In this document: positions 36,758-64,000 of the stretch, in pieces
Layout: every line of letters begins with the position of its first letter
How positions within the stretch are numbered: position 1 is the stretch's first letter
Made by a program: the position numbers and the translations under genes
The notes under the pieces: model-generated
Databases searched by the model: none
What the model saw: only the letters and a program-made list of their open reading frames with translations
What the model was told of the DNA's origin: nothing
From: Macrostomum lignano
Taxonomy: Eukaryota
Assembly: GCA_002269645.1 (NCBI GenBank)
Contig: NIVC01002353.1
Location: 117,575 to 181,574 of the forward strand
Reading direction: 5' to 3'
DNA: 64,000 nt

Positions 36758-42749
<5,992 letters not shown>

Positions 42750-44156: not shown

Positions 44157-46164
44157 CATCGCCCAGCCACCGACATTTCCCTGCCGGCGGACGCGCCGAA
44201 GCAGCTGCTGCCGGAGAAGCACGCCGACTTCCTGTTGCAGTACTGCAGCAGCCAGGACAACTACGAGTACGTCATGACCGAGTACCTGCGCATGTCCGGC
44301 CTCTACTGGACCGCCAGCGCCCTGGACCTCCTTGGCCGCCTGCCCGACCTGCGACAGCGGATGGACGCCGCCGCCTTCTTGCGGGACTGCGCCAGGCCCG
44401 ATGGCGGCTACGGGCCGGCGCCCGGACACGACAGCCACCTGCTGTACACCCTGAGCGCCGTGCAGGTGAGCAGGTGAGGGTGCGGCGGAATGGGTGCGGC
44501 TGGGGTGTCAGGTTAGGACTGGGGTGTCAGGTTAGGACTGGGGTGTCAGGTTGGGACTGGGGTGTCAGGTTGGGACTGGGGTGTCAGGTTGTGACTGGAG
44601 TGTCAGGTTAGGACTGGGGTGTCAGGTTGGGACTGGGGTGTCAGGTTGTGACTGGAGTGTCAGGTTAGGACTGGGAAGTCAGGCTAGGACTGGGGTGTCA
44701 GCCTGGGACTGGGTGTCAGGTTGGGACTGGGGTGTCAGGTTGGGACTGGGGTTTTCGTTGTGTCAGGATGGGACTGGGGTGTCAGGTTGGGACTGGGGTT
44801 TCGGGGTGTCAGGATGGGACAGGGGTGTCAGGTTGGGACTGGGGTACGAGTATAAGGTTGGGACTGGGGTGTCAGCCTGGGACTGGGGTGTCAGGCTAGG
44901 ACTGGGGTGTCAGCCTGGGACTGGGGTGTCAGCCTGGGACTGGGGTGTCAGCCTGGGACTGGGTGTCAGCCTGGGACTGGGGTGTCAGGTTGGGACTGGG
45001 GTGTCAGGCTGGGACTGGGGTGTCAGGACGAAATTTGGGATGTCAGGATTGGGATCTTGTCTCACACAATTGTCAGCTCCAGCCCTCCGCCTACCCCAGG
45101 TGGCTCTGCTGTTCGACCTGCGGGACTCCCTGGACGCCGGGGCCATCGCGGGCTTCGTCCGCGGCCTGCAGCGGCCTGACGGCAGCTTCCAGGGCGACCG
45201 GTGGGGCGAGGTGGACACCCGCTTCAGCTTCTGCGCGCTGGCCGCGCTGTTCCTGCTGGGGCTGGGCGACCGCCTCGACGACCTTGTCGACGCTCGCGCC
45301 GCAGGCGACTTCGTGCTGACCTGCGCCAACTGGGACGGCGGCTTCGGCACCCGGCCGGGCAGCGAGTCGCATTCCGGACAGGTGCGGATCTTGCCTGGCT
45401 ACTCACAGTAGGCAGTGCAGTGTCCCAGCTACTCACAGTAGGCAGTGCAGTGTCCCAGCTACTCACAGTAGGCAGTGCAGTGTCCCAGCTACTCACATTA
45501 GGCAGTGCAGTGTCCCAGCTACTCACAGTAGGCAGTGCAGTGTCCCAGCTACTCACAGTAGGCAGTGCAGTGTCCCAGCTACTCACAGTAGGCAGTGCAG
45601 TGTCCCATCCCAGCTACTCACAGTAGGCAGTGCAGTGTCCCATCTCAGCTACTCACAGTAGGCAGTGCAGTGTTCCAGCTACTCACAGTAGGCAGTGCAG
45701 TGTCCCAGCTACTCACCGCAGGCGCCCGCCCGCAGGTGTACTGCTGCATCGGCGCGCTGTCCATCCTGGGCCGCCTGCACGAGCTGGACGTGGACCGCAC
45801 GGCGCTGTGGCTGGCGGAGCGGCAGCTGGCAAGCGGAGGGCTGAACGGCCGGCCGGAGAAGCTCCCGGATGTGTGCTACTCCTGGTGGGTGCTGGCCTCC
45901 CTGGCCATGCTCGGCCGGCTGTCCTGGATCTCCGGCGAGCGGCTGCTGCGCTTCGTGTGCGCGGCGCAGGACCCGGAGGCTGGCGGCATCGCCGACCGGC
46001 CCGGCGACCTCTGCGACCCCTTCCACACCCTGTTCGGCCTGGCCGGCGCCTCTCTCCTGCGGCTGGGCGGTGACTCGCTGAAGGCCATCAACCCGACTTT
46101 CTGCCTGCCAGTTGACTGTCTGGACAGGCACGGACTGCGGCTGCCGCTCTGGACTGGCGACTGA
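44157..46164 (+). CDS. RABGGTB: Rab geranylgeranyltransferase (GGTase II) beta subunit. Exons 44157-44465, 45100-45381, 45736-46164; initiator Met not encoded at the exon start
   Basis: Motifs [75 protein letters not shown] and [15 protein letters not shown]. Phase-0 introns match. Confidence 0.96.
44500..45020. repeat. Intronic 19-bp G-rich minisatellite GGGGTGTCAGGTTGGGACT
   Basis: Tandem array in RABGGTB intron 1. Confidence 0.93.
45399..45716. repeat. Intronic 30-bp minisatellite CTACTCACAGTAGGCAGTGCAGTGTCCCAG, about 10 copies
   Basis: Fills RABGGTB intron 2. Confidence 0.95.
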
Positions 46165-46843: not shown

Positions 46844-47612
46844 GTGCTCCGCTCGCTTCAGGTATTCAGTGCTGAGCCTTCAGTGACAGGTGCTCCGCTC
46901 GCTTCAGGTATTCAGTGCTGAGCCTTCAGTGACAGGTGCTCCGCTCGCTTCAGGTATTCAGTGCTGAGCCTTCAGTGACAGGTGCTCCGCTCGCTTCAGG
47001 TATTCAGTGCTGAGCCTTCAGTGACAGGTGCTCCACTCGCCTCAGGTATTCAGTGCTGAGCCTTCAGTGACAGGTGCTCCGCTCGCCTCAGGTATTCAGT
47101 GCTGAGCCTTCAGTGACAAGTGCTCCACTCGCCTCAGGTATTCAGTGCTGAGCCTTCAGTGACAGGTGCTCCGCTCGCCTCAGGTATTCAGTGCTGAGCC
47201 TTCAGTGACAAGTGCTCCACTCGCCTCAGGTATTCAGTGCTGAGCCTTCAGTGACAGGTGCTCCGCTCGCCTCAGGTATTCAGTGCTGAGCCTTCAGTGA
47301 CAAGTGCTCCACTCGCCTCAGGTATTCAGTGCTGAGCCTTCAGTGACAGGTGCTCCGCTCGCCTCAGGTATTCAGTGCTGAGCCTTCAGTGACAAGTGCT
47401 CCACTCGCCTCAGGTATTCAGTGCTGAGCCTTCAGTGACAGGTGCTCCGCTCGCCTCAGGTATTCAGTGCTGAGCCTTCAGTGACAGGTGCTCCGCTCGC
47501 CTCAGGTATTCAGTGCTGAGCCTTCAGTGACAGGTGCTCCGCTCGCCTCAGGTATTCAGTGCTGAGCCTTCAGTGACAAGTGCTCCACTCGCCTCAGGTA
47601 TTCAGTGCTGAG
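46844..47612. repeat. Highly homogeneous 46-bp tandem array GTGCTCCGCTCGCCTCAGGTATTCAGTGCTGAGCCTTCAGTGACAG, about 16.5 copies
   Basis: Period 46 (46844, 46890, ...). No spacers. Confidence 0.96.
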
Positions 47613-48177
47613 TGTCGCCTGTGTGCGCGCATAGCATTGCCCTGGCAACCCGAGACCTGGCAGTGACAGCAGTTAACAGCAACACACAGATAGGCAAATT
47701 CAAATGTGCCCGCTTTTAAATAAAAGTAGCGCCACGCTCCTGCCCCAAAGCTGCTTCTTTACAGTGACCTGCCTATCTGCCTTCCTACTTGTCTGCCAAC
47801 CTTACCTGCCCGCCAGCTTACCTGTCTGCTCAGACTAACCGAGTCAAAGGTAATCCCAACATTCTTTATTCTATTGCAACTTTAGCTTTTGACCAAACGG
47901 GCTGAGATGATAACTTGCCGGTCGAGTCGGTCAGAAACATCGAAACATCCCATCCAGGTCCCCTTGGACTTCTTTGGAATAAACGGGGATAAAATGGGGA
48001 TTTCACGAGAACTCACCGCTTAAGCTCCACGGCCAAGGTAGCAAACTTTCACTGAGTATTGAAGATGTGCTAAAAGTACATTATGCAACGCCAGCCAATT
48101 GGATAGACGACGCATATACAAACATAGCATTTGCTCCAATTGTTCCAATGCGATGGGCCATGACTGAGGAATTCTTA

Positions 48178-48300
48178 TAGCAGGCCAGCTTCCCATAGCA
48201 GTGCCAGCTTCCCATAGCAGTGCCAGCTTCCCATAGCAGTGCCAGCTTCCCATAGCAGTGCCAGCTTCTTATAGCAGTTCCAGCTTCTAGCAGTGCCAGC
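48178..48300. repeat. 20-bp repeat TAGCAGTGCCAGCTTCCCAT, about 5 copies (single copy at about 60055 in the paralogous block)
   Basis: Directly visible in both blocks. Confidence 0.85.
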
Positions 48301-48814
48301 TAATTCCCATAGCAACAACGGCATCCATTAGCAGTGCCGCCACTCACTCTGCTCCGGTTTCTACTCAATGCTTAATGCGCGCGCACCTCTGACTCTCGGG
48401 GAAAAAACCCGGGTTAGATTTATTTTTTGACCGCACTGATTCGGTGGTTGTGCGCAAGATTTCACCTGGGGCTCGAGCGATTCTCACACATGATTGCCAA
48501 ACCCCACGGCACCGTGGTGCAGCTTGACAATGAAAAAGTCAGGGCCGCTGTGCACCCTTTGTGACTTTGAGTTTGTGTGCGAGCTCAGGGGTCAGCGGAA
48601 TGTTCATGACTGCTGGCTTTCTTGCCGGCCTCTGATCGACTGCAGCCTTGATTAGTGTCAGTTCTAAAGCCACTTTGATGCATTTCCAAATCTCACAGCT
48701 TTTTCCTCCATGTCATAGTAAATTCAAATTCAAAAGCCCCTTCTCAAACATCACAAACCCAAACACGGACGCATTTCAGGTGTGTTCAACTCGACTGACG
48801 CTCAATTCTTTCCG

Positions 48815-51800
48815 ATGGCCGCTGCTGAGCAAATGCGAGCTGCGCTGGAGGCCGCCGACTGCGAGCAGCTGCTGAAGCTGTGTCGGCAGCTGGACTCCAA
48901 CCTGACAGTTTCGGCCGGCTACTTTGAAGGTCCGCCTCACGTGAGAGAAATTTCGGCGGCTCACCACGTCGCTAGCAAGCCGTACGGACTTGACTGTCTG
49001 GAGGTGCTGATCGACCGGTTCGGAGCTGCATGTTTGACATGCAGAGACGAGTTCAACTACACACCTGTGCACTTGGCCGCCATTAAGCAGAGCCAGGACA
49101 GTCTGAAGCTCATTCACATGACTCTTGGCAGCGACTGTTTTTATGAAAAAGGAAGATTTGGTCGCTCAGTGATTCACTGCGCTGCCATGAATAAGCATAG
49201 CAACAAGGCACTGAAGTGGCTGATCGGTGAGTTCGGGTCAGACAATCTAATGGCGAAGGATGACAATGGTTCGACAGTCGTTCATCTATCAGCTGAGTTT
49301 CAGAGCTCAGATTCGATGGAATTCATTAAATCAATGCTCGGTTCCGACTGCTTCCGTCAGAACGGGTGGCTTGGTCACACCGCAGTTCACTGTGCTGCTT
49401 GTACGAGCGTAACAAGGTCTCAAACTCGTCGCTCAAGTGGCTGATCGATGAGCTCGGCTCAGTCTCTCTCATGAAGGAGGATGACGATGGATCGACAGTC
49501 GTTCATCTGGCCGCCGGGGCTCAGAGCTCAGATTCGATGCAGTTGATTAAATCGGAGCTCGGTTTCGACTGCTTCCGTCAACGTGGGTGGCTTGGTCGGA
49601 CACCAATTCACTGTGCTGCTTGTAACAAGGTCTCAAATTCGTCGCTCAAGTGGCTAGTCGATAAGATCGGTTCAGACTCTCTCATGGAGAAGGATGACGA
49701 TGGATTCCCAATCGTTGGTCTGGCCGCCGCGTTTCAGAGCTCAGATTCGATGCAGTTTATAAAATTAAAGATCGGTTCCGACTGCTTCCGTCAGCGCGGG
49801 TGGCTTGGTCGCACCGCAGTTCACTGTGCTGCTTTTAACAAGGTTTCAAACTCGTCGCTCAAATATCTAGTCGATGAGATCGGTTCAGACTCTCTCATGG
49901 AGAAGGATGACAATGGATCGACAGTCGTTCATCTGGCCGCTGTGTTTCAGAGCTCAGATTCGATGCAGTTTATAAAATTAAAGATCGGTTCCGACTGCTT
50001 CCGTCAGCACGGACGGCTTGGACGCACTGCAGTTCATTGTGCTGCTTATAACGAGGTCTCAGACTCGTCGCTCAAGTGGCTGATCGGTGAGCTCGGCTCA
50101 GACTCTCTCGTGGAGAAAGATTACATCGGATTGATGGCTTGTCACCTTGTCGCAGCTCATCAGGGTGAAAACTCCATGGACTTGATGAAGAGCCTGCTCG
50201 GAGTTAAAACATTCCCTTTGCGTCATCGTTTTCGCCAAACTGCAGCCCATTTTGCTGCACTAAATACAGGCAGCAATGCGACACTGGCCTGGTGTGTCAG
50301 AGAACTGGGCTCCCAGTGCCTGACTCGTGTAGACAGAGACGGCAACACTCCAGTTCACTATGCCGCTCAGCATCAAGATGAGAAATCGATGCAGCTGGCG
50401 GTGAGCTCACTCGGACCGGACTGTCTCAAGCTGCCAGGTGACAAGCAGCGAACTGCAGTTCACTTCGCGGCCATCAACACCAACAGCGTCTCTGCGCTAA
50501 GGTGGATTGTCGGTCAGCTGGGAGCCGACTGTCTGAAGCTGAGGGACGCCGAGGGCATCACGACTGCGCACCTGGCAGCTCAGCACCAAAGCGAGGACTC
50601 GCTGCGGCTCATCAGGGACTCGCTGCGGCTCATCAGGGACTCGCTGGGCGTCGCCGCCTTCGACTTGCAGGACCGGCAGGGACAGTCGGTGGTGGACTAT
50701 GCAAAGAAGAACAACCGGTCGGAGCGGATGCTGGGCTGCATCGCCGAGCTGCGGGAGGAGGAGAGGCTAAATAGGTGAGCTGCCTGCTGCTTAAAGACGC
50801 CATAGCGTTGAGGCCATTTAGTATATTTGGATATTACGTACTGTATAATACACAGCAGAGCAAACCTTAGTCAAGCTTATTTTAACTTGTATAGCGAGTC
50901 CCGTTATCGATTGCTTTTTCGTTAGCGGGATTATCGTTCCCGTTTACCTGCCGTAGCCCGAACAACAACGACAACAACAACAAAGAAAATAATGTCAACA
51001 AAGCAATAATAACAGTAACAACAAAAACAACAGAAAAGCACTGACAGACGCAATGCATATACCAAAGTTTTTAGGTTCTTTAGGACACTTTAGGTTCTTG
51101 ATTTATTTATTAAGCTATGGTAAAAATAAGGACGGTCAAATTCCTACTTCTATTCGATTCGATTTAACCTCGGGAAGAAGGAGAAACAGGATGAAGTCTG
51201 GCTTCGTTGGTTTTGCTCAAATCAATCGAGTCTTCTCAATTTTCAGGACGTGGGAAACAAGTTGACATTCACAGTGGTTTTCAGACTTTTGTTTAACTTT
51301 GACAATGAGCATCAATATTCATTTGTATGTCAGCTTTCTGGTTTGGTTTAGGATTTGACTTACTCAATATACCTGTGAATGATAATTCGTTTTCAAAGTA
51401 TGCAAAGTGTGATTTTATGTGAAATTATGATTGTACATACTTTGTCAACAACAATGATTTTGGAAGTTCCAATACATGTACATTGGGGACCGCGGGTCCA
51501 CACCTGATACAGCGGTAAGAAAGACCAGCAGTCCCAAAACTGCATTGCAATCAAAGCAGTCACGTTTTTCTGCTTCCAGAGCTCCGGCTTCCTTGGACCC
51601 GAGCTTCAGCAGCTGGACCTTCTAGCCTGACGATCGGAGAGGGCGGGTTCGGCAAGGTGTATAAGGCCTTCACCAATAGGCAGCAGACGGTTGCTGTCAA
51701 AATCGTCGAGCCCGTTCGCTGCAGCGATCCGTCGAAGCTAGAGATGGCGGTGGAGCAGGAGAGGCGGGGCTTCGAGATCCTCGTGCGCATCCGGCACCGG

Positions 51801-52473
51801 AACATCGTGCAGTTTCTCAAGACCGAGCGCTCAGCGGAGAACGGGTTCTGCATCTTCACGGAGCTCATCGCAGGGTGCAGCCTCCTCGATCTGATGAACC
51901 GGCTGAACAAGCCGTTCGATGAGCCAGCAGTGAGGCGTTTCTCGCATCAAGTGAGCTGTCACTCCTGCCTCTGCCACAGTGTGAATACTGAGCGAACAGC
52001 TGACTCTTCGACCCCGAACCCCTTTGCAGATCTGCAGGCGCTCAACTTCCTGCACTGTGAGCACATCGTCCACCGAGACATCAAGTGCTCCAATATCATG
52101 CTCACCCACGAGAGCGTCATCAAGCTGATCGACTTCGGACTCGCAAAGGAAATCGTCTCAGCAGCGCAGGGAGCCGCGACCTACACCCTCGGAACTGTTC
52201 ACTTCATGGCCGCAGAGCTGCTTCTTGATGACGAGAATGACCGGCTGGTGTACACTCCGAAGACAGATGTGTGGGCGTTCGGCTGCACCGTGTTCGAGAT
52301 GCTGGAGAGGAGGCCACCAAAAGGTCAGAGTGACTTCAAAGGGCATGCCGCAGCTGCCAGACGGGACCTCCGACACTCTGAGAGATTTCTACCGGCGCTG
52401 CGTGATGAAGGAGCCTGGAGAGCGGGCGGATACTGCGGAGCTGCTGCGACACAGCTTCCTGCAGAGCGGGTAA
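48815..52473 (+). pseudogene. Ankyrin-repeat/MAP3K-like kinase, copy 1. Ankyrin exon 48780-50774, kinase exons 51580-51950 and 52030-52473; several frame breaks (pseudogene or assembly error)
   Basis: About 17 ankyrin repeats (T..H.AA). Donor AG|GTGAGC (phase 2) matches acceptor TTCCAG|A, giving R-APASLDPSFSSW. Kinase motifs GEGGFGKVY, VAVK, HRNIVQF, HRDIKCSN, DFG, GT..FMA.E and DVWAFGCTVFEM. Frame breaks at about 49400 (8-nt insertion), 51625, 52030 and 52320. Confidence 0.75.
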
Positions 52474-53270
52474 GCGTGCGGACTCGAGCTTTGCACTGCA
52501 CAGTTTGAATCACAGAATATTTGCGGTAAATTCTGTAAACTTTCACTATTCTACTATTTTGTTTTTTACTGCTTTATTGTTTAACTGTTTTGCTGTTTTA
52601 GTGCTATTGACCGACTGAATGTCGGATTTTTATTCATTCTCACCTTGTTGCTCTTATTATTCAACTTTAAGCTGCTGCATTGTTCTGCTGTATGCTGCTA
52701 AAGTCGTTGTCTGCTGCACTTGACCATGTTTTTCTGTTCCACGAGCGTCTACTGTAATGCCTTTATATTGTTCTGCCGTTTCGCTGTTTGCAAGTAAAAT
52801 TCAGAATGCAGCAGTTTTCAAGTCAGTTATACGCTCGTAAAAAGTGATTTTAATTTTTGCTTTGCACTTTTATTTGAAAATAATAAGTTGTGTGACTTGC
52901 CCGGTATCTCTCGGGACGCAGATTTGATTCAGATTCGCTTTTGATGCCACTCAACGATTCCACAGCGACTCCAGCACGCCTCAGATACAACTCTACGACG
53001 CCCCAGAGTCGTCGCACATAATAAAAACGCCTCAAATTGACTCTTACGAGTATGCGACTCGTTTGACAACTTTTTGACGTCTTGTCACGGCTAGAGTTAC
53101 TTCTTTTCTATTTTATGTGCTAGCTGCAACGACTCTCTGAAACTATTCTGTTGCTGCGCAAGTGACTCTGGGACGCTTCTCGCTTCTTGGCACTGGTTGA
53201 GCCATCCGCTCATTTATAACTGTACATGTATAGGTCCCCTGCCCTACCTGTCGTTAAGCTCCTCAGTCAC

Positions 53271-53284
53271 GTTGCCATGGCAAC
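53271..53284. promoter_or_regulatory. Perfect RFX X-box palindrome GTTGCCATGGCAAC
   Basis: Exact 14-bp consensus palindrome about 740 bp upstream of the ATG at 54026. Confidence 0.65.
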
Positions 53285-54025
53285 AGACTGGCTTAAAGTT
53301 AAAGTTCCCAGTCGAGAACCGGGATTAAATTTGGGTTCAGGTCAAACGCTCAATTTCACATAGCTGGTACAAGGGTTGTTTGTCTTCGGTCAGTTTCCAC
53401 TTTGGTCAGTGTCAGTTCTAAATGACTTTTAATTCAAGAAAAAAGGTGGAGCTGACGCTGCTCATACAAATGTTTTTAAACAAACTGGATTATTCACAAA
53501 TCCGTAACCTTAATCTCTTCATGATCCCAAGCTCAGTTCAAATCAGCCTTCGCTTCTTGCGCACACAGGGGCAGAGCAGCTCAGCGGTAGCGCATCTGCC
53601 TCGTGCACAGAACTGACTCTAAGCTTGTACGATTCTGACATAGTTTGAAAGCGGTTCGGATAGCACCTGAGTGCTAGGATCGACCCCAAATGGCAGCTGG
53701 AAATTCTGACTATCAGAGGATTGGCAACGCATCTCAGTTTGCGAGAATTCTGGACAGAAAAGCCAAAATCTTTCTAATGCTGGAATAAACAAATCTGCTC
53801 GATCAAGAGAACCGGCTTTAACTAGCCAATGAAGATGGCCCAGCCATTCTCAGCCAACCATCGGTCTCAAGGGAAACAAAACACTATCAAATAAATAAAT
53901 CCCAGTCTTAACCTGAAAGCTTAACTCCCAGACCAGACTGAGTTTTCGAAAGTTCAAGAAGAACACCCGAAGCCGCTGAGGATTTCAGTGGTGAAGACAA
54001 ACGGAGATACTCGAAACATTTGGAA

Positions 54026-55707
54026 ATGCCAGCTGGAATTCTAGCGCTGCTGTTCGGCTGCATGGCTGCTGTGACAGGTGAGGCTTCTCATGCACGTTGC
54101 AGAAGCATTGCCGGTCAAATGCACTGAGTGCCTGCGAAACATCAAGAATTGAAAATTTTTAGAAGTTGTCAACCACATTTGTTAACTGTTGTGATGGCGC
54201 AGCCGCAGTTTGCAATACACAGAATCTCCTCAAACCAACAGGCGCCCACCAATCCAGCCTCTTCACCGCTGTCACCGGACCCGTCCTGATCGGCAACGCC
54301 TCCAGCAGCGAACTCGTCAACCTGACCGGCGTCCAGACCCGGCTGAAGTGTCTGGCAGCGTGCCAGCGGAAGGGCTGCCTGCTGGCTTCGCTCATCCCCA
54401 GCTCGCGCGTCTGCCAGCTGCTGCTGCTCAACGACGCGTCTCAGGCGCCGGGACCGGCCGGGACTCACGTGCAGAGACTCGTGGGCTCCGAGCCCGGCGC
54501 CAGGCTGTGGGCGGCCGAGAACTTCACGGAGCTGATGCTGATGAGGAAGAGGATGCTGAATGTCACCATTGAGCTCAGAAGTGAGGAAAAGCCCATGTTT
54601 GCAAAGTTCTGTGCTTCGAGCATTTGTTGCACCTCGACATCTGATCTGCAGCGCCCTCTCTCACTGCAGACAGCGGCACGGGCAGGGCCGGCTCCATCCA
54701 GTCCGTGACGATCCCCTCGACCGGCTGCTACCGGATCGAAGTGTCGGGCGCCAGAGGCGGCACCAACTCCTTCTCAGGCAAGGCTGGCGGCAGCGGCGCC
54801 TTCGTGTCCGGCGCCTTCAACCTGACGGCCGGCACCCAGCTGAGCGTCGTGGTCGGACAGGCCGGCGGTCTTCCCAGCTCCCTGCACAGCGGAGGCGGTG
54901 GAGGCGGCGGCAGCTTCGTGTTCAGGACGGCAGATGAGCTGCTGCTGGCTGCAGCCGGAGGCGGCGGTGCCGGGACCTACGGCTCAGCTGGTGAGTCAAA
55001 ATTGCTTCAGGAAAACTGGAGATAGCAGATTTTCTAAATGCTCTCTGATATTTAGGCGTTTATGTTATTCTTGTGTCTGGTTTTCAGTTGATGTCAGTTT
55101 TCGAGAGATTTGACATCAGCTTCAAAACACAAAAGCAAACCGAATGGCACCGATCAAAATTAATCTGTTTTTCTATTAGCCGGTTAAACTGGATTTATTT
55201 AAAATTAAGTCACGAGCGACGAATTCGCAGGCCTGCCCGGAGAGGCCGGCGTCAACGGCTCCGTCGCGAATCCGAGCGGAAACAGCCACGGCGGCAGCAA
55301 CGGACAGCCACAACTCCAGCGCCATGACCAGCAACCAGAACCTCGCTGGCTGCGGCGCCGGCTGGCTGGGGAAGCCGGTGTGCACCAGGCGGGGACCGGA
55401 CGACGGTGACGGAGGCGGCAGTCGGGCCGAAGGCTGGCTGGGCGGCGACGCCGGCGGCTCCAACACCGGCGACGGCGGGTTCGGCGGCGGCGGAGGCGGC
55501 GGCACGGTGAACCCCAACTATGGCGTTGCCGGAGCCGGCGGCGGCTTCAGCGGAGGCGCCACCAGCTTCTCGGGGAGCCCTCCAGGAGGTGGCGGCGGCT
55601 CCTTCTGCTCCGGCAGCGGCTGCAGCGGCACCACTGGCGGCAACGCCGGCCAGCACGGCCTGGTGGTCATCCGGCTGGTCGATCCGCTGAGCAACTCTTG
55701 CGAGTGA
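54026..55707 (+). CDS. Secreted protein: signal peptide, PAN/apple-like Cys module and ALK/LTK-type glycine-rich (GR) domain. Exons 54026-54077, 54242-54580, 54670-54990, 55231-55707 (one frame break near 55305)
   Basis: MPAGILALLFGCMAAVTG signal; C..AC...C...S....S..CQL PAN-like spacing; VTIPSTGCYRIEV.GA.GG...GG.GA...G.F.L..G..L.VVVGQ.G, GGGGGSFV, LL.AAGGGGA, GGFGGGGGG, GAGGGFSGG, GGGGSF and G.V.I. All three phase-1 introns match. Confidence 0.85.
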
Positions 55708-58694
55708 CGATTTCATGGAAACTGGACATTGTCCAACGGAACTGAGACTGTGTTGTTTTGGAGTGGAATGCTGTGGCAGTTTTTTGGGAAATTTTCAAGT
55801 GTTTACTTTTTTATTGGCGACCGTTTCCGCTACAAGCCGAACACTATCAAGTCCAGGTGAAACTTTCACGGTGGAGTGACTTTGGGACCTGCTTTTATGC
55901 CTAATACGCTTGACTCTGCAGTGGGCGAGACCAGCAAAGTAGCAATACTCTTTGCCTTAAATTAATCTCGTGTTGTATTCTTGCACTTTTGTTGCAGTGC
56001 AAGGGCATCCCATTCTTTAGTCGTTGTGGTGACTCAGTTAGTCCGCCTTGCTTCATGCGTTATGCGCTAGACTGTGATTTTTTGTTTGGTTTAAGCCTTA
56101 GCCTCCCCCCGCAGTTCTCCTTGTTGTCACTATTCTCGTGCCTTGCGTGTACTTTTTGTTGTTTACTGCATTCTGATTGGCTGGGCCGGCAGCGGGCTGG
56201 TGTTTAATTTTTTGCAGGGGGTGGTGGGCTGGAGGGCTTGCGGACCCCCTTCCTCGGGCCGTGGCGCGGGGTGTCGTTTTCGTTGTCTTGGGATTCGGAG
56301 CTAGACTAGAGGGGTACATTGGCACGGCACTGGCTTCATTGTATGCCAGCCTGCACCACCGCAGACATCACGGGTCTGTGCATCAACACTTGTATGTAGC
56401 CTGTGGGCTTTGGGATCCAGGGATACACTACTCTCTTGATATCTCAAATACTTTAGCTTGCTAGTACGAGCGAGTTCGGATGAGGGGGGGTTTAAAGTTG
56501 CATTTGTTACTTCGTCAATAATCCTATTAAATCTATATTATCCCAAAAATCGCCATAAAGGGGTCGACTTAGTTCGAAAATGTTTGAACATAATACTTTT
56601 ACCTGCTGCTTGCTTAATCCTGAGTCAATCACTTTCAGTGCAAAAAAGTTCGCTGCCTCCATAATCCCAATGACTCATCTCTAAAACTTCTCAACTTACA
56701 AAATGCAACCCACCGCTACAATTCTCGCCTCAGCCGGACAAGGGTGAAGGTCAAATTCTTTAGTCAACTGGCCTCGGGTACACAAGACTCTACTGAGCTG
56801 ATGAGAGAGAAAAGACATGTTTATGTGCTCACACCTACTTTCTCGTGCTCAAGATCCAAGTCTCCCGATGCTGCCTGCCTGCCTGAGTACACCGCGTTTA
56901 CTCCTCCCGTCCCATCCTCGACTCGTCTTGCCATGGAAAGAGTGATTAAAACTAGATAAAAGGACACCCGCTACTTCCAATATGTTCAGAGTTCCCGAGC
57001 TCGCCAGTTTGATCCACTGCACTAAAATTAATAACTTCAATGGCTGATGCTGAGCTGTCTTATTTTCAGCAGGAGTCTGGTGAATTAGACTACATCAAAA
57101 AATGGATTTAACAGTCCAGAATTTGTTTCGTAGAAAGTGACCGGAATGCCAACCGAGCCAAAAGATGATGAGAGACGAACAAGCGGTAAAAAAATCGGCC
57201 AACAGCTTCGCGATTGGACCGATCGAGCTGACCAGCATCGAAGAGTTGAAAGCCGTCGGTTATCGGATCTAAGGCTTCATCAAGGAATCTGAACGCTATC
57301 AAGGAGATTATTCACGACAGCCAGAGCCAAGGTTTGTCACTGTGTATAAGCGCGAGAGGAATTCTCCAGTGCATGAAGATGGTGCTAAAAATACCAATAT
57401 CGAATCTTTTTAAAGCAGATTGGCTTTACACCGGCTTGGGTTAATTTCCTAGTCCGGGTCTCCAGTTCTCCAGCGCAGCCGAATTTCCCTTTTTACATCT
57501 AGGAGCAATGAATAGGCATCTGACAAAGGCTGCTGATTGCTGCTGATGGAGAATGAGGAGCTGGCTCAGGCCGATTTCCGATCCTTGGCTTCTATTGAAC
57601 ATTTAGGGTGTTTTTTGATTGCTTGAACTCGGGAGCAAATTTTATAGCGAACCAGATGCTGCAGTATCCGTTTTTATACGTTGAAGTAGGGGTCGCAAAG
57701 TTTTGAGGTTGGGGCAAGCTATACCAAGCTATTCAACCCAATATTAGAAACCTCTACATGCATTGTTAAAGAACAAAAAGTATGGCTCATTTTTAACCCC
57801 GGCAACAAGAAGTTTCTGCTGGCGGAGCCGCTATTGAAACCGCGATTGGCATCACGTGACCAGGCCTGGATCCCGGCTTCCATAGCGAGAACACCAGCCA
57901 GGGAGCAGTGAGTGATCCGCCTTGCAGCTCAGACCGAGGAGCTCAGAATTCAGGGACTCCCAGGCACAGGTGCTCGGGATTTCAGATTCCCGGAAATGCC
58001 CAGAAAGTGACTGACTTTGACTCTGATCCAACTCTGCCGAACCCGATCACCGGACCTGATCTTCGAGCAGCATAACTGATACATGAGTCCGGTCCATCAG
58101 CAGCAGTTAGATTGACTCAATCTAGATTGACCCATCTGTGCAGCAGCCAGTGCTCAAGTTCGCCTCTCTGCAAGCATCTTCATCGCCAGCCTCCGGCTCT
58201 GAGCCCCACCCTCCCAGAGAATTGAGCAGCTCTAATAGCTCTATAGTGCCGAAATTCTGTGCTCAAACGTGCTCGCCTCATCATCAAGGCTCTCCGTCCC
58301 TCTGCAATCGTCCCTCTCAAAATGCAAAACGCGCGGCATTTTGGGCCAAGTTTTGCACCTGCTCGATACCCCTGAGTACTCTATTGTTTGCTGCCGTGGC
58401 CCTGCGGCTCCACCAATGCAGAGCTCGAAGGCCCGCAGCCGCCTCTCCGCCTTCGGCCCCATCTCAGCCTCCAGCCTCCGACTCACCCATTGTGCTGCAG
58501 CTTCGCTCTGTCCCCATGCCTGCCCCGAGCTCAGAAGCCTCTCAGCTGAGTACGCGCTTGCGGGGCAACGGCAGTGTGCAGAAGCTCTAAGAATCGATGA
58601 GGCGGTTTAAGGAGCAGCCAGCAACCGCTCGGCCTGAGACCGGCCACACTGCTCAGCTGGAGGCGCTGCCAATTTTGCTACTCGAATTCGGCTG

Positions 58695-59060
58695 TGTTGC
58701 CTGTGCTGAAGGTGAGTCTGTGTGGTTTCTGTGTGCTGCCTGTGCTGAAGGTGATTCTGTGTGGTTTCTGTGTGCTGCCTGTGCTGAAGGTGAGTCTGTG
58801 TGGTTTCTGTGTGCTGCCTGTGCTGAAGGTGATTCTGTGTGGTTTCTGTGTGCTGCCTGTGCTGAAGGTGAGTCTGTGTGGTTTCTGTGTGCTGCCTGTG
58901 CTGAAGGTGATTCTGTGTGGTTTCTGTGTGCTGCCTGTGCTGAAGGTGAGTCTGTTTGGTTTCTGTGTGCTGCCTGTGCTGAAGGTGAGTCTGTGTGGTT
59001 TCTATGTGCTGCCTGTGCTGAAGATGAGTCTCTGTGGTTTCTGTGTGCTGCCTGTGCCTG
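58695..59060. repeat. 39-bp tandem array GTGCTGCCTGTGCTGAAGGTGAGTCTGTGTGGTTTCTGT, about 9 copies, with alternating GAG/GAT variants
   Basis: Directly visible. Stop-free in several frames. Confidence 0.95.
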
Positions 59061-60149
59061 TGCATTGCGAGACAACTGCCGTTGGCAGATGACTATTTGC
59101 GGAAAATGCAAGTCTATGAATTTCGAAAAAAAATTTTTAAGACTAATTGTAGACGAAAGCTGTGAAAATTAGAGAAAATCGACTAAATCTCAGTAAATCT
59201 TGGTAAATTTCAGAACCGTAATAGTAGGTTTTTGTCAAGGCGGAACAAGTAATAGTCGAATTTGTCCTGTTGCTGTCATATAAAGGGGCCTATCTTGAGT
59301 ACTAGCTAAATATGATCTATAGCTTAAATTGCTGTCATTTCAGCTGAGCTCTGGGTACTGCCTGACTGATATTGCTGGCCACCAATGCAGGTGCGCGCAC
59401 TGTTCTCCCCTCTCCTTCCAGCTGTCTGATTCCTCATGTAGGTCACGTGACCCAATTATTTATCCAATGTGCCCCCTGCTCATGTCTTCAATATATAAGA
59501 TCTGCGCAATATGAGCCAGGAACCAGTTTGAATTTCCTTGATTGATCTGCTGTTGTCTTCTGCAGGCACGGGTGCCCGATTCTCGTCCGAGAATTCGGCT
59601 CAGTTCGTTCCCGTGAGTTCATGCTGCTTGAGCACAGCATTTGGTTCCGCTGTCCCAGGGACCCGGGGATCAACCAGAAACAGCAGAGACAGCTGTGGGC
59701 GATTTTCTTTGGGTGCCAGAAACTGGGTGTGGCCTGGATAACTTCCCGGTCGAGTCGATCAGAAACTTCGGGACATCCCATCCAGGTCTCTTTGGTGCTC
59801 CTGAGGATAAAGGGAGAAATTTTAATTTCACGAGAACTCACGAGAGCTCCGGAATGCCTGTACCGGTTAATCTGGCTGCTGTCGCACTGGAGGCGGACAA
59901 GCCGACAAGTCACCGATTTCATTCGGTTCGGTCAGCGTCCCGCATCTTGAGCTCCATCTCGGTTGCTTAAGCTCTCAGCTGCTTTATTGTTTCTAATTTG
60001 TTGGTTTACCTCCAGCTTCAGCTTTAAACTCCATTAAATCTACAATATTTAGCTCCATAGCAGTGCCAGCTTCTCATATCAGCAACACCTTCCCGAAGCA
60101 GTGCCTCCGCTCCCTCAGCTCCGGTCTCTGCTGCCCCGCCACATCTATG

Positions 60150-60212
60150 CAGTAGTCAGAACAGTTAACACGCGCCTGACTCGTGGCGAAGAACCCGGGT
60201 TCGATCCCGTGT
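60150..60212 (+). mobile_element. Degenerate tRNA-derived (SINE-like) segment upstream of ankyrin-kinase copy 2
   Basis: Perfect B-box GGTTCGATCCC near 60198, preceded by TAGTCAGAACAGTTAACACGCGCCTGAC. A more decayed homologue lies at about 48360-48420. Confidence 0.35.
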
Positions 60213-60416
60213 TTAGCCGCACTAATTCGGTAGTCTTGAGATTTGTGAGTTTGTGCCTGCGTGCGAGCCACCCTGATACATTCCGAAATTTTGCAGATTA
60301 CATTGTCAATCTCATGGCAATCAAGGGACATTCGATGCAAAGCCCCTCAATTCTCAAACACAAACACGGACGAATTGCAGGTCGTGTTCAACTCGACTGA
60401 CGCTCAATTCTTTCCG

Positions 60417-63400
60417 ATGGCCGCTGCGGATCAACTGCGAGCTGCGCTGGAGGCCAACGACTGCGAGCGGCTGCTGAAGCTGTGCCGGCAGCTGGACTCC
60501 AACCTGACAGTGTCGTCTGGCAAATTTAAAGACCCGCCTCACACGAGAGAAATGTCGGTGACTCACCACGTCGCTAGCAAGCCGTACGGACTCGACTGTC
60601 TGGAGGTGCTGATCGACCGGTTCGGAGCTGCATGTTTGACATGCAGAGACGAGTTCAACTACACACCTGTGCACTGGGCCGCTATGGAGCAGAGCCAGGA
60701 GACCCTGCAGCTCATCCACGTAAACCTGAGCAGCGACTGTTTTTATGAAAAAGGAAGATTTGGTCGCTCAGTGTTTCACTGTGCTGCCGTGAATGAGCAT
60801 AGCAACAAAGCTCTTGAGTGGCTGATCGGTGAGCTCGGCTCAGACTCTCTCATGGAGAAGGATGACAATGGCTCGACAGTCGTTCATCTGGCCGCCCAGT
60901 GTCAGAGCTCAGATTCGATGGACTTCATTAAATCGAAGCTCGGTTCCGACTGCTTCCGTCAGCGCGGGTGGCTTGGTCGCACCGCAGTTCACTGTGCTGC
61001 TTGTAACAAGGTCTCAAACTCGTCGCTCAAGTGGCTGATCGATGAGCTCGGCTCAGACTCTCTCATGAAGGAGGATGACAATGGTTCGACAGTCGTTCAT
61101 CTGGCCGCCGGGGCTCAGAGCTCAGATTCGATGCAGTTCATTAAATCGGAGCTCGGTTCCGACTGCTTCCGTCAGCGTGGGTGGCTTGGTCGGACACCAA
61201 TTCACTGTGCTGCTTGTAACGAGGTCTCAAACTCATCGCTCAAGTGGCTGATTGGCGAGCTCGGCTCGAACTCTCTTGTGGAGAAGGACGACAATGGATC
61301 GACAGTCGTTCATCTGGCCGCCCAGTGTCAGAGCTCAGATTCGTTGGAATTCATTAAATCGAAGCTCGGTTCCGACTGCTTCCGTCAGAGCGGATGGCTT
61401 GGTCGCACCGCAGTTCACTGTGCTGCTTTCAACAAGGTCTCAAACTCGTCCCTCAAATGGCTGATAGATGAGCTCGGCTCAGACTCTCTCTTGGAGAAGG
61501 GTGACAATGGATCGACAGTCGTTCATATGGCCGCCGAGTTTCAAGGCTCAGATTCGATGCAGTTCATTAAATCGAAGCTCGGTTCCGACTGCTTCCGTCA
61601 GTGCGGGTGGCTTGGTCGCACCGCAGTTCACTATGCTGCTTGCAACAAGGTCTCAAACTCGTCGCTCAAGTGGCTTATCGATGAGCTCGGCTCAGACTCT
61701 CTCATGGAGAAGGATGACGATGGAGTTACAGTCGTTCGTCTTGCCGCACAGTGTCAGGGATCAGATTCGATGGAGTTCATTAAATCGAAGCTCGGTAACG
61801 ACTGTTTCCGTCAGCGGGGATTTCTTGCAGGCACCGCAGTTCACTATGCTGCTTGTAACAAGGTCTCAAACTCATCCTTAAAGTTCCTGATCGATGAGCT
61901 GGGCTCCGATTCTCTCATAAAGAAGGTTGAAGATGGATCGACAGTCGTTCATATGGCCGCCGAGTTTCAAGGCTCAGATTCGATGCAGTTTATTAAATCG
62001 AAACTCGGTGCCGACTGCTTCCGTCAGCGCGGATTCAAGGGACGCACCGCAGTTCACTGTGCTGCTTGTAACATCAACAGCGTCTCTGCGCTAAGGTGGA
62101 TTGTCGGTCAGCTGGGACCCGACTGTCTGAAGCTGAGGGACGACGAGGGTATCACGGCTGCGCACCTGGCAGCTCAGCACCAGGACGAGGACTCGCTACG
62201 GCTCATCAGGGACTCGCTGGGCGTCGCCGCTTTCGACTTGCAGGACCGGCAGGGACAGTCGGTGGCGGACTACGCAAAGAAGAACAGCCGGTCGGAGCGG
62301 ATGCTGGGCTGCATCGCCGAGCTGCGGGAGGAGGAGAGGCTGCGAGCCTCGATGGAGGACAACCGTCTGCATAGTAGTTCTGCTGAGGGACAACAGGATG
62401 GGTGAGCCGCCTGCTTAAAGGGACAATTAGCGTTGCGGCCAGAGTAAAAGCTGGTATAAGAGCACCCTCTTAGATAATGTGCTTAGATAATGTGCTTAGA
62501 TAATGTGCTTGTATATGGTGCATACGACAGATTCAATTGCAAGGAGTCTCAAGCATTGATTAGCGGGTTTGTCGATTAAAGAAGTCGTGAATTCTTTTGA
62601 ATATCGAGCCGCGTCTGTGTTGTCAGACGATTCGGTTTTCCACAGTTACTGCAAGTTTTGCGTCTTGCAGCCTCACAGTTGCTGTGGCCGGACTGGCCGC
62701 ATCTGTAGCAGGTGAGGAAATGGCTTGCTGACTGTGGTGGGCGGTCCAAGTGACTTCTGCTTTGCTGCTGTTGCCGATTTTTTTGCTGCTGCGTGGCGCT
62801 TTGCGTGCTAATCGCGGCGACGGTCGAATCCTTCGACAGCTCGATTGCCGTTGGTTGCGCTTCTGAAGCTTCGTGGGCGTCGCTGAGCAAAATGTCGGAT
62901 TCTCGCAGTAGTCGGCGACGAAGTGCGTCAGAGAGGCAGGTGGCGACCAACTGATCACGAATGATGGAATCGCGAAGTTCTCCGAAGTCGCAGGTGTCAG
63001 CGGGTGCTTTCATCCGAGCGTGCCAGCTGTCTATGGTCTCTCCCAGCTGTTGTGTGCACTGCCGAAACTGATACCGTGCAAAGACCAGGTTTTTGGTCGT
63101 TGAAGTACTTGGTCAGTTGAGTCAGAAGCCTCTTCAGCAATTCTCTTGTGTCTGCGTGATTGGCTTGCACTTCTCTGGTGATCACCACTTACGACGTATC
63201 CGCTTATGCACTTATTCTGTTTCTTCTGAGATTCCAGATGCTCGATTGAATTTTGAAAGTCGCTGGATGGACTGAATGACTCGGGTGGTGGTTGAAGAAT
63301 AATGTTTGCCATTGTACTTATTTATTCCCCATTTCGGCAGCAATCCCCCATTGCTTCAGTCTTCCAACATTTTCCAGTGTGAAGCCGTCTCTGGACCCCG

Positions 63401-63768
63401 CCTTCTCCAGCTGGGAGTTCCTCCTCGATGTTGACGGCAACACGCAGCTGCTCGGAGCAGGCGGTTTCGGCCAGGTGTACAAGGCGTTCACCGATAAGCA
63501 ACAGACTGTGGCTGTCAAGATCGTCAAGCTGGAAGGTGCCAGCAGTGCCAGCCTGATAGACGAGGCCATCGAGAAGGAGAACGCGGAGATCTCAGTCCTG
63601 AAGGCCGTCCGGCACCCGAACATCGTGCAGTTCCTCAAGTCTGAGCGCATCAAGAAGGGCGAGCTGTGTATCTTTACCGAGCTGATCTCCGGCCACAGCC
63701 TCTCTGAGCTGATGCAGCTGCAGCGACGGCCCTTCGATGAGGCAGCAGTGAGGAACTTCTCCAAGCAG
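60417..63768 (+). CDS. Ankyrin-repeat/MAP3K-like kinase, copy 2 (intact as far as seen). Ankyrin exon 60381-62401, kinase exon 63378-63768; gene continues past the window
   Basis: Uninterrupted ankyrin ORF with about 17 repeats. Donor GG|GTGAGC at 62401 (phase 2) matches TTTCCAG|T at 63377, giving G-VKPSLDPAFSSW...GAGGFGQVY..VAVK..E..HPNIVQF. The next donor CAG|GTGAGA is at the same codon as in copy 1. Confidence 0.85.
62576..63250 (-). mobile_element. Decayed Ty3/gypsy-type gag fragment inside the ankyrin-kinase intron
   Basis: Q.GETIDSW.ARMK..A..CDFG...DSIIRDQLV......LRRRLLRE, followed by zinc-knuckle-like CYRCGQSGH and CSNCGK. Stops and frameshifts upstream; no pol seen. Confidence 0.75.
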
Positions 63769-63931
63769 GTGAGATCCCACACCACCCATCCAGCAGTGAG
63801 GACTTCTCCAAGCAGGTGAGATCCCACACCACCCCATACAGCAGTGAGGGACTTCTCCAAACAACTCAGATCCCACACCACCCCATGCAGCAGTGAGGGA
63901 CTTCTCCAAGCAGCTCAGATCCCACACCACC
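63743..63931 (+). repeat. Four copies of an about 48-bp unit spanning the kinase exon end and its splice donor
   Basis: CAGCAGTGAGG..CTTCTCCAAGCAG|GTGAGATCCCACACCACCC at 63743, 63791, 63839 and 63888. Confidence 0.92.
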
Positions 63932-64000
63932 CCTGCTCACTCGCTCCCCAACTCACAGTTCTGCACAGCGCTCCACTTCCTGCACAGCCGCAGTCCCGTC

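Follow-up and report, generated by a model that had tools for sequence, protein, structure and literature searches.

Near one end of a 64,000-nucleotide stretch of DNA from the flatworm Macrostomum lignano (GenBank assembly GCA_002269645.1, contig NIVC01002353.1, positions 117,575 to 181,574 of the forward strand), open reading frames (ORFs) for ankyrin repeats are followed, twice over, by ORFs for a protein kinase, and the question raised by this locus is whether each pair constitutes one gene or two. The whole stretch is called the window here, and coordinates are those of the window unless another sequence is named. Positions 48780-64000 contain two homologous units in tandem on the + strand, gene 1 and gene 2, which are members of a Macrostomum family. 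An initial annotation had proposed that these units are fusions of an ankyrin array to a MAP3K-like kinase, hidden by an intron. The evidence presented below makes it likely, taken as a whole, that the locus holds tandem members of a family that joins ankyrin repeats to an STE-group kinase, that gene 2 is intact and gene 1 is a pseudogene, that modules have been exchanged between paralogues, and that the family may have a role in injury or cell-death signalling.

Gene 2 begins with a 5' (untranslated) exon (58625-58714, +), the start of which is undefined and which ends at the donor AAG/GTGAGT (the slash marks the splice junction). The main exon (60381-62401, +) has an uninterrupted ORF from its first ATG at 60417, where it reads MAAADQLRAALEA, and encodes approximately 17 ankyrin repeats in 661 codons; the two codon bases left over at 62401 place the GTGAGC donor that follows in phase 2. 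The ankyrin/kinase intron (62402-63377, +; 976 nt) ends in a pyrimidine-rich ...ttttccAG, and kinase exon 2 (63378-63768, +) starts by reading (G)VKPSLDPAFSSW. Continued in phase 2, the protein reads G-VKPSLDPAFSSWEFLLDVDGNTQLLGAGGFGQVYKAF...VAVK...IFTELISGHSL...FSKQ, with the junction motif LDPAFSSW and the Gly-loop GAGGFGQV, up to a phase-0 donor, GTGAGA, at 63769. The second intron (63769-63958, +; 190 nt) consists mostly of a 49-bp tandem repeat (63743-63933, 3.9 copies) by which the final codons of kinase exon 2 and its donor recur inside the intron, creating potential alternative donors. Kinase exon 3 starts at 63959 (FCTALHFLHSRSPV...) and reaches the window edge at 64000, past which the gene continues. 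Gene 2 (60417 to past 64000) is intact as far as the window extends, with all catalytic elements of the kinase N-lobe kept. Only the N-lobe lies within the window, and the remainder is known solely from the UniProt model P0028, a 99%-identical counterpart of gene 2 (99.3% identity to kinase exon 2) in which HRDIKCSN, DFG and APE are all present.

On re-reading, the phase-2 GTGAGC donors at 50774 and 62401 and the pyrimidine-rich acceptors at 51580 and 63378, on which the initial annotation had based the fusion, were all confirmed. The peptides predicted at the two junctions are homologous, as had also been noted, but genes 1 and 2 arose by duplication (their ankyrin exons share 88% DNA identity), so the two junctions are not independent evidence. 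Evidence from transcripts is available at a duplicate locus, designated L001: a 26.8-kb piece of contig NIVC01002192.1 of the same assembly (GCA_002269645.1, Mlig_3_7) that is collinear with window positions 48883-61930 and 95-98% identical to them, a degree of identity typical of duplicated blocks in the neopolyploid M. lignano genome (PMC5730564). GenBank models of Mlig_3_7 were derived from StringTie/TACO assemblies of RNA sequencing reads together with mapped de novo transcripts, and were cut wherever trans-splicing or poly(A) evidence indicated a boundary (PMC5730564). One such model, P0002 (BOX15_Mlig007832g1, Mlig007832.g1), occupies the position of unit 2 in L001 and passes from a 5' exon (codons 1-30 of this 5'-partial model) that matches window 58625-58714 with 100% identity to the ankyrin exon and on to the kinase exon. 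Its splice, from GATGA/GTGAGC to TTCCAG/AGCTCCGG, uses the exact homologues of the window sites and gives the junction peptide ...EGQQDE-APASLDPSFSSW.... The 5' exon of gene 2 lies at the 5' edge of a 39-bp minisatellite (58693-59057, 9.4 copies; many more copies in L001 10244-11127) and overlaps it, and because the unit of this minisatellite carries the donor AAG/GTGAGT, the repeat provides a ladder of equivalent donor sites downstream of the 5' untranslated exon.

A phase-2 intron located 3-5 codons before an LDPxFxxW motif is also found in three further transcript-based paralogues, which are 45-60% identical. The ankyrin/kinase intron is a GC-AG intron of 156 nt at the conserved position in P0001, begins with a GTGAGT donor in P0006 (approximately 718 nt) and begins with a GTAAGA donor in P0009 (approximately 73 nt); the non-canonical donor of P0001 (L002 12227-12383) reads AAG/GCAGGC. 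In P0161, a protein of a relative encoded on two intron-free contigs of 3.1-3.2 kb in the Logan assemblies of SRR28338163 and SRR28338164, the ankyrin repeats and the kinase are contained in a single ORF of 877 amino acids, with LDxxFxxW kept and a kinase 50-58% identical to those of the Macrostomum family. Homologous splice sites are used by the transcript-based models, both in L001 and in the paralogues, which supports the conclusion that the ankyrin array and the kinase are one gene, joined across a phase-2 intron, as the initial annotation had supposed.

The predicted protein consists of the ankyrin array, a short linker, the conserved LDPxFxxW motif and the kinase. The array comprises 13 strict T.VH.AA cores spaced by 35 or 36 amino acids, two degenerate cores and two caps, which upholds the earlier estimate of approximately 17 ankyrin repeats, and it matches Pfam Ank_2 with an E-value of 1e-47 ahead of the protein kinase domain. 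At the DNA level the array is homogenised with a period of 213 bp, equal to two repeats (a double-repeat unit of 71 amino acids), and the tandem array of gene 2 contains 5.9 copies (60817-62073). The number of ankyrin units varies between the duplicated loci, and unequal exchange may be what holds the units similar. Among the six 71-amino-acid units of gene 2, a small sample, variability by position peaks at 13/14 and the turn; a hypervariable binding surface is not claimed for this array because six units are too few. The annotated P0002 protein (776 amino acids) omits array blocks of 213, 426 and 213 bp (L001 12723-14954) that are not bounded by GT-AG, so repeat units were collapsed in transcript assembly and the model is approximately 284 amino acids too short. 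No hydrophobic stretch is present in the protein (maximum 19-residue Kyte-Doolittle mean 1.12) and the N-terminus does not resemble a signal peptide, which supports the earlier prediction of a cytosolic product.

Gene 1 has the same layout as gene 2, but all three of its coding exons carry lesions. Its ankyrin-array exon (48815-50774, +) is 54 bp shorter before the donor than those of gene 2 and P0002; its intron (50775-51579, +; 805 nt, GTGAGC...CCAG, phase 2) has the sites homologous to those used by P0002, with donor 50774/GTGAGC and acceptor ctgcttccAG/51580; and the kinase reading starts with (R)APASLDPSFSSW. Compared with the intact paralogue P0002, gene 1 has a nonsense codon and four indels that shift the reading frame. 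The ankyrin array, in which the initial annotation had seen a single ORF, is broken into two ORFs of different frame by an 8-bp insertion, ACGAGCGT, at approximately 49403-49410; none of the other 213-bp units has this insertion, nor does the copy of gene 1 in L001 (copy 1; 583 versus 591 bp). The N-lobe exon (51580-51950, +) contains an in-frame TAG (51621-51623), three codons after SSW, where P0002 has Leu, and a 20-bp deletion at approximately 51633. The C-lobe exon (52030-52473, +), which ends with the stop codon TAA (52471-52473), contains a window-specific 1-bp deletion at approximately 52037, at ICRALN, and a 26-bp deletion at approximately 52322-52326. A micro-intron of 18-30 nt was considered as the cause of the C-lobe frameshift and rejected, since its length is not 3n+1 and comparison with the paralogue identifies a 26-bp deletion. 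The TAG and the 20-bp and 26-bp deletions are common to gene 1 and L001 copy 1, which lacks the 8-bp insertion and the 1-bp deletion, carries a frameshift not seen in gene 1 and is without an annotated gene. The lesions shared with an independently assembled duplicate locus are not sequencing errors, the private lesions of each copy indicate neutral decay, and the retention of introns makes gene 1 (48815-52473) an unprocessed (duplicated) pseudogene whose decay proceeds independently in each of two duplicated genome blocks. Of the two fusion genes originally envisaged, therefore, gene 2 stands as a candidate functional gene and gene 1, with five lesions, does not. The kinase motifs that had been noted (IFTELIAGCSL, HRDIKCSNIML, GTVHFMAAE and DVWAFGCTVFEM) are present in gene 1, where, as in P0002, MAAE replaces APE; gene 2 has only its N-lobe in the window.

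Gene 2 is composed of modules with different closest relatives. Its ankyrin caps are 95-97% identical to those of P0002 and 42-57% identical to those of P0001 (BOX15_Mlig023755g1), whereas its kinase N-lobe is 90% identical to that of P0001 and 59% identical to that of P0002; the P0002 kinase, in turn, is 96% identical to the kinase of gene 1. Gene 2 thus combines an ankyrin module of the Mlig007832 lineage with a kinase module of the Mlig023755 lineage, and the DNA homology between the window and L001 ends approximately 35-80 nt into the gene 2 intron (62437-62483). The same combination of gene-2-specific ankyrin units with the gene-2-specific kinase is found in the UniProt model P0004, which is based on another assembly (ML2), and this combination, with the 99.3% match of P0028 to the kinase exon, indicates that the join is probably real and that whole modules have been exchanged between paralogues via the phase-2 intron. 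The intron also contains, just past the break in L001 homology, a gag-like ORF with a CCHC zinc knuckle (62576-63010, -), a retroelement fragment that may mark the recombination by which the kinase module was swapped.

Each of these structural conclusions has an alternative. Transcriptional units of M. lignano often hold several trans-spliced genes (PMC5730564), and the ankyrin array and the kinase might be separate genes of a polycistronic unit, with the kinase acceptor serving as a spliced-leader trans-splice site and with separate products. Several models in UniProt contain the kinase alone, with a start that coincides exactly with the exon-2 boundary (P0026-P0028), ankyrin-only models are annotated in M. 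lignano, and an in-frame TGA directly follows the gene 2 donor, overlapping it, so that retention of the intron would end translation at once and an ankyrin-only isoform is possible. Separate genes are nevertheless very unlikely, because the sole in-frame ATG of gene 2 kinase exon 2, at 63712, lies 3' of the ATP-binding elements (the Gly-loop and the catalytic Lys of VAVK), and the exon cannot be an independent cistron that yields an active kinase. None of the kinase-only models begins with a Met, and they resemble truncated predictions. The pipeline behind the transcript-based models, which takes gene boundaries into account, left ankyrin array and kinase together as one gene in at least five paralogues, phase compatibility has been maintained across paralogues of only 45-60% identity, and P0161 is one ORF.

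As for gene 1, continued function would require either sequencing errors or alternative splice sites: a phase-2-compatible acceptor, ccttctAG/C, at 51623/51624 would bypass the TAG and restore ...LTIGEGGFGKVYK, and a second AG at 52037, which would move the exon start to 52038, would restore the frame after the 1-bp deletion. Neither site can bypass the 8-bp insertion in the array or the 26-bp deletion, which removes conserved residues between subdomains IX and XI; with three lesions present in an independently assembled duplicate that has no annotated gene, and with further private lesions in each copy as neutral decay predicts, a functional gene 1 is scarcely credible. For gene 2, the module combination might be an assembly chimera formed at a repeat or retroelement in the intron, since the L001 homology breaks beside the retroelement fragment and M. 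lignano assemblies are highly redundant and repeat-rich (PMC5730564). That explanation is very unlikely given that in P0004, predicted on another assembly, the gene-2-specific ankyrin units are again linked to the gene-2-specific kinase and that P0028 matches the kinase exon so closely.

The kinase, once the frame of gene 1 is repaired, matches Pfam Pkinase (PF00069) with 161 bits (4.6e-47), and the partial kinase of gene 2 matches with 72 bits (5.7e-20), against a gathering cut-off of 31.7 bits; Pkinase outscores PK_Tyr_Ser-Thr (161 versus 120 bits). By these profile scores the domain belongs to the eukaryotic protein kinase superfamily, and it is predicted to be active from GAGGFGQV and VAVK in gene 2 and from HRDIKCSN, DFG and APE in P0028. 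Searches of PDB sequences with a single sequence and with an 18-member family profile returned top matches that were all of the STE group (SLK, LOK, PAK, MST, TAO, ASK1 and MEKK2). The profile scores were 172 bits for SLK, approximately 164 for MST3/4, YSK1 and PAK1, 162 for ASK1 and 159 for MEKK2, with NEK1 (155) and WNK1 (153) approximately 17-20 bits below the best. An AlphaFold2 (AF2) model of P0028 (pLDDT 75, pTM 0.78, activation loop disordered) was compared with solved structures by Foldseek, in which all of the top 23 matches were ASK1/MAP3K5 (TM-score 0.78-0.86, E-value 2e-21, 29-30% identity), followed by MST3, STK10, MEKK2 and TAO3 with E-values that are close (2e-21 versus 7e-20 for MST3). 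No TKL kinase was found among the best 60 PDB sequence matches or the best 50 fold matches. The first named neighbours outside Macrostomum are a PBD-domain (PAK-type) kinase (P0081), a plant MAPKKK and MAP3K19, at approximately 33-35% identity. The safe statement is that this is an STE-group kinase with ASK1/MAP3K affinity in a divergent lineage-specific family; of the MAP3K/STE11 label given initially, the STE group is retained, and STE11 becomes one of two near-tied assignments, the other being STE20, so that a MAP3K/STE11 identity is no more than plausible.

One kinase subfamily (alignment A1: P0048-P0074, P0003 and P0005) has HRDINCSN, with Asn in place of the catalytic-loop Lys, a substitution that is unusual in Ser/Thr kinases.

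The family is large and, on the matches recovered, confined to one genus. With the kinase as query, at least 57 M. lignano clusters at 90% identity were found at E<1e-28, beyond which there is a gap and then kinases of other organisms at 33% identity; all strong protein matches are from M. lignano, and the best matches outside Macrostomum are approximately 31-35% identical. In an exhaustive profile search of 1.84 billion representatives, only M. lignano proteins and P0161 scored above the family range; the top 150 proteins below Macrostomum were mostly unnamed multi-kinase proteins with inflated summed scores, which are of little use for classing the kinase. Four Macrostomum species are represented among the 73 sequences of orthogroup OG0000013 of Brand et al. 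2020 (PMC7336406, Tables S1 and S5): M. lignano with 39, M. spirale with 18, M. hystrix with 10 and M. pusillum with 6. The orthogroup lists Mlig007832.g1, Mlig023755.g2 and Mlig028886.g1, and the window genes are 90-97% identical, module by module, to P0002 and P0001. Sequence comparison shows a family that is restricted to Macrostomum and, as the initial annotation had suggested, expanded in that lineage. Family members are clustered in tandem elsewhere (L001 has a third ankyrin gene farther downstream, and P0001 is followed after 9 kb by another ankyrin-kinase gene), and no further members were found elsewhere in the window. The architecture was not hidden from public annotation, as had been thought: several GenBank and UniProt models of M. 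lignano already show Ank and Pkinase domains, under the names "hypothetical" or "protein kinase domain-containing", and the family is present there but uncharacterised. No paper or functional study of it was found in the literature, and the combination of a long N-terminal ankyrin solenoid with an STE/ASK1-like kinase, in dozens of copies in one flatworm genus, is undescribed in the searchable literature.

Clues to function come from domain fusions and expression. P0288 (Mlig024305g1) and P0289 (Mlig021840g1) are transcript-based models that join a kinase, 44-49% identical to the HRDIN subfamily, to a Peptidase_C14 (caspase) domain; P0239 is a predicted protein with kinase, ankyrin and caspase domains; and P0010 has an ankyrin array almost unit-for-unit as in the ankyrin-kinase P0001, followed by a caspase domain with QACRG. 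The possibility that P0239 is a merger of neighbouring genes is countered in part by P0288 and P0289, which, being transcript-based, indicate that at least the kinase-caspase fusion is real. The active-site motif of the P0288 caspase is QAEKQ in place of QACRG, so P0288 may be a pseudo-caspase. A tblastn search of the window with P0010 matched the ankyrin part (residues 13-607) and left the caspase domain (630-812) unmatched. OG0000013 is upregulated in regenerants compared to adults in two species; its positional class is Non-Specific/Other, and none of the labels for gonad, tail, neoblasts or germline is attached to it (PMC7336406). Look-ups of the gene identifiers in the expression supplements of PMC5816591 and PMC12896417 returned no entries.

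From the caspase fusions and the upregulation of the orthogroup in regenerants, injury or cell-death signalling would be the most likely field of action. The ankyrin solenoid may be the recognition or scaffold part of the protein, binding a protein partner or ligand; binding or clustering might then release the kinase or allow it to be trans-activated by phosphorylation of its activation loop, as in other STE kinases; and the output of the kinase may feed stress or death pathways, a proposal prompted by the resemblance of the fold to ASK1, the fusions to caspases and the expression associated with regeneration. The family might instead act in reproduction or sexual conflict, like many fast-evolving expanded Macrostomum families, given that protein divergence in OG0000013 is high (mean 1.05) and that some of its members respond to social group size (OvI), both up and down (PMC7336406). 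Against a reproductive role, which is unlikely, stand the Non-Specific/Other class with no testis, ovary, tail or germline fluorescence-activated cell sorting (FACS) annotation, the adult-versus-regenerant (AvR) signal of upregulation in regenerants in two species, and the fusion of both kinase and ankyrin modules to caspase domains.

The reading of the locus as a whole has to be set against several points that weigh on the other side. The splicing is documented at a 95%-identical duplicate and in paralogues, not at this exact locus, and ankyrin-only members of the family are annotated. The variation among the six ankyrin units is only weakly concentrated at the canonical ankyrin binding positions. 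The evidence on kinase family is split, with sequence leaning slightly toward STE20 and structure leaning slightly toward ASK1. The C-lobe of gene 2 lies beyond the window, and its integrity is presumed from P0028. The suggested role in injury or cell death draws on domain associations and on an orthogroup-level expression summary with mixed signals.

If the modules are as mobile as gene 2 suggests, Macrostomum may possess a private modular cytosolic toolkit, in which interchangeable, diversifying ankyrin receptor arrays would be combined with either an ASK1-like kinase or a caspase effector by shuffling via the phase-2 intron, as a lineage-specific sensor-effector analogue of death or defence systems that would be active in wounding and regeneration. 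We regard this larger proposal as doubtful; if it is true, gene 2 would be a module exchange caught in the act. M. lignano is a tractable regeneration model, with RNA interference and transgenesis, and through this family one could test how new injury, death or defence signalling is made within a single lineage, and how exons are shuffled between the tandem paralogues of a neopolyploid genome. The consequences for annotation are that many kinase-only and ankyrin-only models of M. lignano are probably halves of one gene, that repeat numbers are collapsed in transcript-based models, and that gene 1 should be marked as a pseudogene.

The window has other features as well. Between genes 1 and 2 lies a glycine-rich gene (54166-55707, +), in which the ALK/LTK glycine-rich domain (PF12810) is matched by the ORF at 54705-55022 (6e-9), ahead of more Gly-rich ORFs up to 55707; the corresponding place in L001 has no called gene. 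Upstream of gene 1 are two minisatellites (47000-47612, 46 bp x 13.3; 48177-48301, 19 bp x 6.8). Exons of ordinary animal genes encode a sugar transporter (14592-15773, -; Sugar_tr, 2e-90), a P-type ATPase (37541-38725, +; E1-E2_ATPase) and a prenyltransferase (44551-45408, +).

Ankyrin-repeat kinases as such are known, and the closest relatives of the window genes are found in the same species: P0002, P0001, P0004 and P0028 belong to the same family and have the same intron positions and phases, although none is identical to the window genes, and P0002, unlike gene 2, pairs a gene-2-type ankyrin module with a gene-1-type kinase. TNNI3K and ILK are cytosolic proteins with an N-terminal ankyrin array of 3-10 repeats and TKL-group kinases or pseudokinases; the domain order is that of the window genes but the kinase group differs, the top PDB matches of the window kinase all being STE, NEK or WNK kinases. 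RIPK4/ANKK1 and DAPK1 combine a kinase with ankyrin repeats in death or inflammatory signalling, with the kinase first and with kinases of the TKL/RIPK and CAMK groups; the N-terminal kinase of RIPK4/ANKK1 is the opposite order to that of the window genes. The NEK-ankyrin kinases of Giardia, a lineage-specific protist expansion with many pseudokinases, resemble this family in joining kinases to ankyrin repeats, and NEK1 scores only approximately 17 bits below the best PDB match of the window kinase; no specific relationship to them was found, with the best matches outside Macrostomum at approximately 31-35% identity. ASK1/MAP3K5, of the STE11 family, is the closest solved fold, with a profile score within 10 bits of the best PDB match, but sequence searches place the STE20 kinases SLK, MST3 and PAK1 at or above it. 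Like the MEKKs, ASK1 has a subdomain IX of the GC.V.EM type; its regulatory domains are thioredoxin-binding, TPR and PH domains, with no ankyrin repeats.

In M. lignano, Horkan et al. 2024 described one caspase that has a kinase pro-domain and is sister to flatworm ANK-caspases, which were stated to be restricted to parasitic flatworms (PMC11463336). The ankyrin-caspase P0010 belongs to a free-living flatworm, contrary to that statement. The window genes differ from the ANK-caspases in having no caspase domain, and the ankyrin-kinase family is neither described in that paper nor linked there to the caspase with the kinase pro-domain (PMC11463336). The kinase pro-domain of the M. lignano caspases (P0288, P0289 and P0239) belongs to the same kinase family as the ankyrin-kinases of the window.

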